Assembly (NCBI GenBank): GCA_002269645.1
Contig: NIVC01000420.1
Coordinates: 372,001-436,000 of the forward strand
DNA length: 64,000 bases
Source of the DNA: Macrostomum lignano
Lineage: Eukaryota
Direction of reading: 5' to 3'
A program made the position numbers and the translations under genes. Positions 14,252 to 15,120 of this stretch are shown here, one piece after another. Within the stretch, counting starts at the first letter, position 1. Each line of letters begins with the position of its first letter. The notes under the pieces were generated by a model. It was not told where the DNA came from, made no database searches, and saw only the letters and a list, made by a program, of their open reading frames with translations.

Positions 14252-15120
14252 TTACAGCAGACACTCCTGAACATATTTGTGCTTTTTCTCGTCCCACCTC
14301 TGGAAGCAGCTCTTGCGGCTGAAATTACAGAATGTCTCACGGTGAGATGGGACTGCCGTTCTGTTTGTTTGTTGTCTGTCTGTCTGTCTGTCTGTCTGTC
14401 TGTCTGTCTGTCTGTCTGTCTGTCTGTCTGTCTGTCTGTCTGTCTTAGTGTCTGTCTGTCTTAGTGTCTGTCGTCTGTCTGTCTGTCTGTCTGTCTGTCG
14501 GTCTGTCTGTCTGTCTGTCTGTCTGTCTGTCTGTCTGTCTGTCTGTCTGTCTGTCTGTCTGTCTGTCTGTCTGTCTTAGTGTCTGTCTGTCTTAGTGTCT
14601 GTCGTCTGCCTGTCTGTCTGTCTGTCTGTCTGTCTGTCTGTCTGTCTGTCTGTCTGTCTGTCTGTCTGTCTGTCTGTCTGTCTGTCTGTCTGTCTGTCTG
14701 TCTGTCTGTCTGTCTGTCTGTCTGTCTGTCTGTCTGTCTGTCTGTCTGTCTGTCTGTCTGTCTGTCTGTCTGTCTGTCTGTCTGTCTGTCTGTCTGTCTG
14801 TCTGTCTGTCTGTCTGTCTGTAAACACAAACGGCAATTTAATCTTACTTGAGCTGGGGGTTGAGCTCCTCATCCAGGTCCTGAGCAGACTCAGCTGCATC
14901 TGCAGTGTAAAAAGTGTTGAGCAGTTGCTGAGTTACTTAAATCTTAAGTCATTTCAAATGCTCCGGTAATCGGATCGCTGAGTCAGCAAATTTTGACTTT
15001 ACCCTCATCGCTGTCAAAAAGCTCAGCATCTTCAGCTTCATCTTGGTCCCGCAACGGGGCGGCCCGAGTAGCAGTGGAGGCAGTTAGAGCGAACAACATC
15101 AGCGCTACCCAACACTTCAT
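14252..15120 (-). CDS. 78-aa prepro-peptide precursor; exons 15120-15003, 14899-14848 and 14318-14252
   Basis: The GT-AG introns are phase-compatible (phase 1 and phase 2). The spliced product is [78 protein letters not shown]: signal peptide, acidic propiece, RK site and a 2-Cys mature peptide. A TATATAAA lies about 90 nt upstream on the minus strand. Confidence 0.85.
14374..14821. repeat. (CTGT)n microsatellite with CTTAGTGT interruptions, filling intron 2 of the peptide gene
   Basis: Visible. The same interrupted motif recurs at 45920-46500 and, inverted, at 51008-51470. Confidence 0.97.

Follow-up and report, generated by a model that had tools for sequence, protein, structure and literature searches.

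Several groups of secreted precursors offer the closest described parallels to the locus examined here. The amphibian skin precursors (preprodermaseptin and the "Rana-box" brevinin-esculentin group) and the cathelicidin-type precursors share a fixed order of signal peptide, D/E-rich spacer, dibasic site and one short C-terminal peptide, and in the Rana-box peptides this last segment carries a single C-terminal disulfide. The precursors of cyclic neuropeptides, among them somatostatin/allatostatin-C, urotensin II and MCH, likewise end in a single Cys-Cys peptide, preceded by a spacer and then by basic residues. The granins (chromogranin A/B) are also secreted, acidic and disordered; they have dibasic sites and a single short segment with a disulfide.

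We analysed a 64,000-nt stretch of the genome of the flatworm Macrostomum lignano (assembly GCA_002269645.1, contig NIVC01000420.1, positions 372,001 to 436,000 of the forward strand; hereafter the window), in which a three-exon gene on the minus strand encodes a product whose layout resembles that of the frog-skin, cathelicidin-type or C-terminal cyclic neuropeptide precursors, but which by sequence belongs to none of them. The frog-skin precursors are vertebrate proteins with a KR site, a 7-member ring and a strongly cationic peptide, whereas the flatworm product has RK, a would-be 16-member ring and a C-terminal charge of +1 or 0; no sequence similarity to frog-skin or cathelicidin precursors was found in an exhaustive phmmer scan. 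From the cyclic neuropeptide precursors it differs in ring size and motifs, no homology to them was found with Pfam or phmmer, and its Cys segment, unlike theirs, is predicted to be helical. The likeness to granins is one of analogy only, since these are proteins of 20-80 kDa with an N-terminal loop and without homology to the gene product. An earlier note on this DNA had recognised no family for the protein, and our searches agree: there was no Pfam match above threshold, and neither the PDB nor the exhaustive scan yielded a relative beyond M. lignano.

The exons, of 118, 52 and 67 nt, join in frame into a coding sequence of 237 nt for 78 amino acids, opening at the ATG at 15120 and closing with TAA (Table 1). 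The donors are G/gtaaag (intron 1) and AA/gtaaga (intron 2), and the acceptors are ctgcag/ and tttcag/. The in-frame minus-strand splice model that had been put forward is thereby confirmed at its GT/AG junctions, and a GenBank product is identical over the same span. Intron 2 is, as had been described, almost wholly a (GACA)n array. The gene was missed by the list of open reading frames because its exons comprise only 39, 17 and 22 codons, under any threshold for such a list.

Table 1. Features of the gene, its further genomic copies, and exon-sized ORFs with domain matches elsewhere in the window. Positions are those of the window unless another sequence is named.
Feature	Position	Strand	Remarks
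TATA box TATATAAA	15207..15214	-	94 nt 5' of the ATG; kept in both paralogous copies
Exon 1, coding part	15003..15120	-	Met1 to first base of codon 40; predicted signal peptide (about aa 1-17/20) and start of acidic region
Intron 1	14900..15002	-	103 nt, GT...AG; 96% identity with paralog
Exon 2	14848..14899	-	52 nt; acidic region, up to N (codon split)
Intron 2	14319..14847	-	529 nt, GT...AG; 612 nt in total in paralog
(GACA)n microsatellite	14360..14821	-	462 nt, period 4, 116 copies, 87% of intron 2; length varies between gene copies
Exon 3, coding part	14252..14318	-	last base of N57; R58-K59 at 14312-14317; 19-mer at 14255-14311; TAA at 14252-14254
Two ATTAAA candidate polyadenylation signals	14096..14118	-	start 134 and 151 nt 3' of the stop; region kept in paralogs
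Paralog copy	NIVC01001075.1, L005 exons 14268-14385, 14489-14540, 15153-15219 (span 14268-15219)		intact
Paralog copy, identical to that on NIVC01001075.1	NIVC01003154.1, L006 about 18977-19928		intact
Exon-sized ORF, JmjC/cupin hydroxylase domain	38711-39448	+	E 1.5e-23
Exon-sized ORF, FG-nucleoporin repeats	49426-50664	+	E 5.5e-15
Exon-sized ORF, part of protein kinase domain	58395-59273	+	E 5e-9

The gene had been called hidden, which it is not: both GenBank and UniProt already list its product as a hypothetical protein, through an annotation derived from RNA-seq. The spliced 78-aa protein is 100% identical to M. lignano PAA83417.1 (hypothetical protein BOX15_Mlig026256g1), whose gene on NIVC01000420.1 spans exactly the same 869 nt as the three-exon model. 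The annotation of GCA_002269645.1 was built from RNA evidence only, combining genome-guided StringTie/TACO assemblies with a de novo transcriptome, and its gene ends were set by 5'/3' and poly(A) data (PMC5730564). Given this origin of the GenBank annotation, both splice junctions carry transcript support; and because an independent, RNA-based gene model yields the same protein, the exon structure is not an artefact of selective reading. Look-ups by protein id returned genome contigs only, with no transcript contigs among them. The gene ID is missing from the supplements of four M. lignano expression papers (PMC5816591, PMC7336406, PMC12896417 and PMC10092323), and a literature search with the gene ID, the accessions and peptide strings gave no match in paper texts. 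This is a real and already annotated M. lignano gene. Taking these results together with those below, we consider it likely that it is a transcribed, apparently lineage-restricted gene whose 78-aa product is a precursor entering the secretory pathway. It is an ordinary lineage-restricted gene for a secreted protein; the gene model is already public, and novelty would lie in a function.

The architecture of the spliced product is as the earlier note described it: the N-terminus is signal-like, a polyanionic stretch follows, and after RK comes a short C-terminal segment that contains two Cys. By heuristic prediction the N-terminus has the shape of an ER signal peptide and is unlike a mitochondrial presequence. 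It carries K2, a core at W4-L12 and then a run of small residues in which the -3/-1 positions would allow cleavage after A17 or A20, and the hydrophobic core, taken as residues 3-13, has a mean Kyte-Doolittle hydropathy of ~2.5. The acidic region (aa 21-57) holds 15 D/E in 37 residues against a single K/R (one R), for a net charge of -14. The 19 residues that follow R58-K59, hereafter the 19-mer, have a net charge of +1, or 0 in the paralog with R64T, and are without a Gly amidation signal. Only two Cys, C61 and C76, lie outside the signal peptide, and they enclose 14 residues rather than the 13 first reported. As a dibasic site RK is less usual, and convertases use it infrequently.

A single-sequence AlphaFold model, whose confidence is low overall (mean pLDDT 61), predicts helices at 4-14 and at 61-77, the second with a pLDDT of ~78, and disorder between them (15-60). 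Plotted on a helical wheel, C61, F62, W65, Y72, V73, C76 and L77 share one face and the charged residues lie on the other; the helical hydrophobic moment of the 19-mer segment is 0.35, a moderate value, versus 0.08-0.12 for a beta strand. The two Cys thus sit 15 residues apart, over more than four turns, on one predicted continuous amphipathic helix (pLDDT ~78 locally, 61 overall). Because they are far apart on the same helix, they would not pair within one chain in the helical form, while disulfides between chains would be possible, for example in an antiparallel dimer. The model does not point to an intramolecular disulfide loop, but it is weak, and such a loop may still form. The description of the product as a disulfide-loop peptide therefore sits poorly with the only structural evidence, this low-confidence model that puts both Cys on one helix.

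Relatives of the protein were found only within the species. A word-indexed search of 5.8 billion proteins returned the protein itself (P0001) and a 96% identical M. lignano variant (P0002) that differs by V5L, T13A and R64T, and an exhaustive phmmer (HMMER) search of 1.84 billion representative proteins at E<=0.001 found only the M. lignano variant and nothing outside the species. A third public variant (P0004, UniProt A0A1I8JI37) is 92 aa long, with the same body and 14 extra C-terminal residues. The extra residues come from an older assembly in which the frame differs by one base at the stop; the current assembly has TAA there. Elsewhere in the 64-kb window tblastn and blastn found no paralogs or related exons. 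Walking out from paralogs of the neighbouring genes located two more genomic copies, both without GenBank annotation (Table 1). Both encode V5L, M8V, T13A, P54R and R64T. Each has retained the TATA box, the ATG, the four splice sites, RK, the two Cys and the stop, and in each the same microsatellite is found in intron 2, in expanded form. In all, the genome has at least three copies of the gene, which fall into two sequence types, and since large recent duplications are known in M. lignano (PMC5730564), we take the copies to be homeologous or duplicated loci. The earlier note had proposed a search for paralogs with a variable mature region; in the paralogs found, the 19-mer differs at one of 19 positions (R64T). 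On NIVC01001075.1 the protein accessions pass from the neighbouring gene's PAA72606 straight to a TGF-beta fragment, PAA72607, skipping the gene copy.

On the reading that we favour, the hydrophobic N-terminus would direct the precursor into the ER and then be removed, and the remainder would be a secreted protein of ~58 residues, made up of a disordered polyanion (net -14) and a 17-residue amphipathic helix. Both Cys would lie on the hydrophobic face of that helix and be oxidised in the ER, across two chains or to a partner, as the helix model favours, or alternatively into a 16-membered loop if the C-terminal segment is non-helical. Our best guess is that the Cys-bearing C-terminal helix would be the interacting end, and that the polyanion might serve as a solubilising, charge-masking pro-region, by analogy with frog-skin and cathelicidin-type precursors. 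A proprotein convertase may remove the polyanion after R58-K59. We regard this cleavage as possible but on balance doubtful, because RK is a less usual site, there is no amidation mark, and the 19-mer is not strongly cationic and, in the recent paralogs compared, does not appear more conserved than the spacer.

Among the alternatives, the one that survives best is the reading first proposed, in which a cut after R58-K59 frees the 19-mer with a C61-C76 disulfide as a bioactive product, be it a neuropeptide, hormone, defence peptide or toxin. The product does have the layout that this reading expects, with a signal, an acidic spacer, a dibasic site and a Cys peptide at the C-terminus; every known variant retains RK and the two Cys; and the extreme C-terminal position recalls the precursors of somatostatin, urotensin II, MCH and the frog Rana-box peptides. 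We nevertheless judge a free cyclic 19-mer unlikely. It would depend on a rarely used convertase site and would be without a Gly amidation signal; the segment is predicted as a single helix with its Cys 15 residues apart, and its beta moment is low (0.08-0.12, versus 0.35 for a helix); and no known peptide family is matched. When amino-acid changes are counted by segment, a comparison that covers recent paralogs only, the 19-mer has changed at 1/19 positions (R64T), the spacer at 1/37 and the signal peptide at 3/20; on this count the 19-mer does not appear more conserved than the spacer. Moreover, R64T takes one positive charge from the 19-mer, and a charge of +1, falling to 0 in that paralog, is poor for a cationic antimicrobial peptide. 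With this charge and a helical moment of 0.35, the segment does not have the character of a strongly cationic amphipathic mature peptide. The antimicrobial or toxin flavour of the original proposal is accordingly hard to sustain, given the low charge, the less usual RK site and the missing amidation signal.

A second alternative is that the ORF, though transcribed, is young and effectively neutral, having arisen de novo or being in fast decay, and that its protein has no function. A comparison of the two sequence types bears on this idea. They differ at 9 of the 237 coding nucleotides (96.2% identity), and the non-coding sequence around them is 97.0% identical over 400 nt upstream, 96.1% in intron 1, 95-100% at the ends of intron 2 and 97.3% over 300 nt downstream. 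The Nei-Gojobori method assigns 4.0 synonymous and 5.0 non-synonymous changes, giving a dS of 0.085, a dN of 0.028 and a dN/dS of 0.32, which, because there are only nine changes, is indistinguishable from 1. To judge from these alignments, the coding sequence appears no better conserved than its flanks, and the paralogs show no clear constraint. The neutral reading draws on this near-equality of the non-synonymous rate (0.028) and the divergence of introns and flanks (~0.03), as well as on the lack of a homolog outside the species and on the fact that GenBank annotates only one of the three genomic copies. Against it, the gene has a well-formed TATA promoter, two canonical introns and an N-terminus shaped like a textbook signal peptide; its ORF is intact in all copies and variants; and the dN/dS point estimate is 0.32. 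The three signal-peptide replacements (V>L, M>V and T>A) are also conservative, in that all preserve hydrophobicity or small size. We hold the neutral reading to be improbable.

More improbable still, in our estimation, is a reversal of roles in which the polyanionic stretch is the working part and the C-terminal helix is for sorting or anchoring, the protein being a granin-like granule cargo, a Ca2+ buffer or a secreted polyanion that neutralises polycations. The composition of the stretch (15 D/E in 37 residues, net -14) and its predicted disorder would suit such roles, and none of the acidic residues has changed between the paralogs. One candidate role comes from the literature: Wunderer et al. 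2019 (PMC6410801) postulated a small, negatively charged releasing factor for the temporary adhesion of M. lignano, and proposed that a small anionic molecule of the releasing gland detaches the Lys/Arg-rich Mlig-ap1. The existence of that postulate favours the polyanion reading; however, nothing puts the gene in the tail plate or the releasing glands, acidic secreted proteins are common, and the releasing factor may be non-protein.

The UniRef label "UCR_hinge domain-containing protein", carried by both P0001 and P0002, implies that the protein is a divergent form of the hinge subunit of ubiquinol-cytochrome c reductase (complex III subunit 6), and there is a superficial resemblance in that the N-terminal half is acidic and a helix with Cys comes after it. 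This reading is effectively already refuted: hmmscan against current Pfam gave no match to UCR_hinge (PF02320) at E<=10, phmmer at E<=10 against all PDB chains, many bc1 complexes included, recovered no hinge subunit, a BLASTP comparison with human UQCRH gave E=15, and the product has only two of the four structural Cys, a single predicted helix at 61-77 in place of a two-disulfide helical hairpin, and an N-terminus that looks ER-type and not mitochondrial.

Two further resemblances came up in the public record or in our searches. The Pfam family DBP10CT / NUC160 (PF08147) scored 19.5 bits with P0001 (E 0.0011) and 17.6 bits with P0002, under the Pfam gathering threshold of 27 bits. Residues 38-75 of the protein (window 14264-14899, spliced) align with residues 811-847 of yeast Dbp10, 13/36 being identical, and the likeness rests on WDEKKHKYV against the yeast WDKKRKKYV (WDxKKxKYV; PDB E-value 0.36). 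Ten shuffles that preserved the composition of each segment gave no DBP10CT match and gave chance matches to other families up to E 0.018, which leaves the DBP10CT match a margin of ~4 bits. Dbp10/DDX54 is a nucleolar RNA helicase, whereas the gene product is a secreted mini-protein, and to judge from the alignment and the shuffles the resemblance is a probable chance match. The second resemblance is in name: UniProt calls the 92-aa A0A1I8JI37 "U22-Lycotoxin-Lsp1e_1". Kinship with the spider lycotoxins was set aside, the exhaustive phmmer search having given no non-M. lignano protein at E<=0.001 and the literature search no mention. What the product shares with U22-lycotoxin-Lsp1e is only the automatic name and a generic layout of signal and acidic propeptide, and it has two Cys, not a set of the knottin type.

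The gene converges with a Cys-rich secreted gene, as had been observed, at a stop-to-stop distance of 4.6 kb. This neighbour (9087-9116 and 9193-9636, plus strand, two exons; PAA83416.1) encodes 157 aa with 20 Cys and a hydrophobic N-terminal segment, and has its own TATA box at about 9000. It gave no Pfam match, the relatives found for it were M. lignano paralogs only, and no support was found for its UniRef name, "VDE lipocalin domain-containing". From the convergence a secreted-effector cluster had been surmised, and this we could not uphold: the neighbours share no similarity, and in the duplicate contig the neighbour block is inverted and ~22 kb away, so that, barring misassembly, the tail-to-tail arrangement is not a conserved unit. 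Collinearity with NIVC01001075.1 breaks at window 12259-12448, and the neighbour-gene block on that contig is bounded by 100% identical inverted repeats of 671 bp (L003 12955-13625 / L005 17051-17721); the breakpoint reflects either a transposon-mediated inversion or an assembly artefact. Directly upstream of the gene, on the same strand, lies a gene for a TGF-beta family ligand (20266-24850, minus strand; 394 aa, PAA83418.1, PF00019), whose paralog on NIVC01001075.1 is annotated as a 51-aa fragment only. Three consecutive genes for secreted proteins are unremarkable.

The rest of the window is rich in repeats and contains several further ORFs. A block of ~5.5 kb (2450-7926) holds a 45-bp minisatellite (2315-3349) and, at 3446-7603, a gag-pol ORF of 1385 aa that is intact and belongs to an LTR retrotransposon. 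An identical 31-residue ORF start occurs at 3446 and again at 7815, which suggests LTRs. The block is absent from the paralogous contig, where L003 joins window position 2449 to 7927, and it is probably a recent insertion. At 39600-45203 lies a 5.6-kb minisatellite with a 24-bp unit in 235 copies (92% matches, with an extreme GC skew of -0.64), which produces long spurious ORFs on both strands, and at least 20 other mini- or microsatellite arrays are present in the window, including two of the (GACA)n type at 45957-46501 and 51013-51470. The exon-sized ORFs with recognisable domains are given in Table 1. Four consecutive long ORFs on the minus strand at 31693-35575 (218, 241, 338 and 422 aa) have no Pfam match, and may be exons of one large gene or an unclassified mobile element.

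Some practical points follow for users of the databases. The labels "UCR_hinge domain-containing" and "U22-lycotoxin" for this gene, and "VDE lipocalin domain-containing" for its neighbour, are without support in the searches run here, and the GenBank annotation lacks two intact gene copies.

It would be a larger claim that the gene founds a Macrostomum-specific family of secreted signalling or effector peptides, whether because the Cys-bearing 19-mer is released at RK and serves as hormone, pheromone, defence peptide or seminal-fluid peptide, or because the polyanion is the anionic releasing factor long sought in the duo-gland adhesive system; we offer it as speculation and think it quite unlikely. 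As it stands, the gene codes for one more uncharacterised small secreted protein of restricted lineage, of which an invertebrate genome has many. If its product were a processed signalling or defence peptide, the finding would be of modest importance, in a flatworm model that is transgenic and regenerating; should the polyanion prove to be the detachment factor that is still missing for temporary bioadhesion, the importance would be greater.
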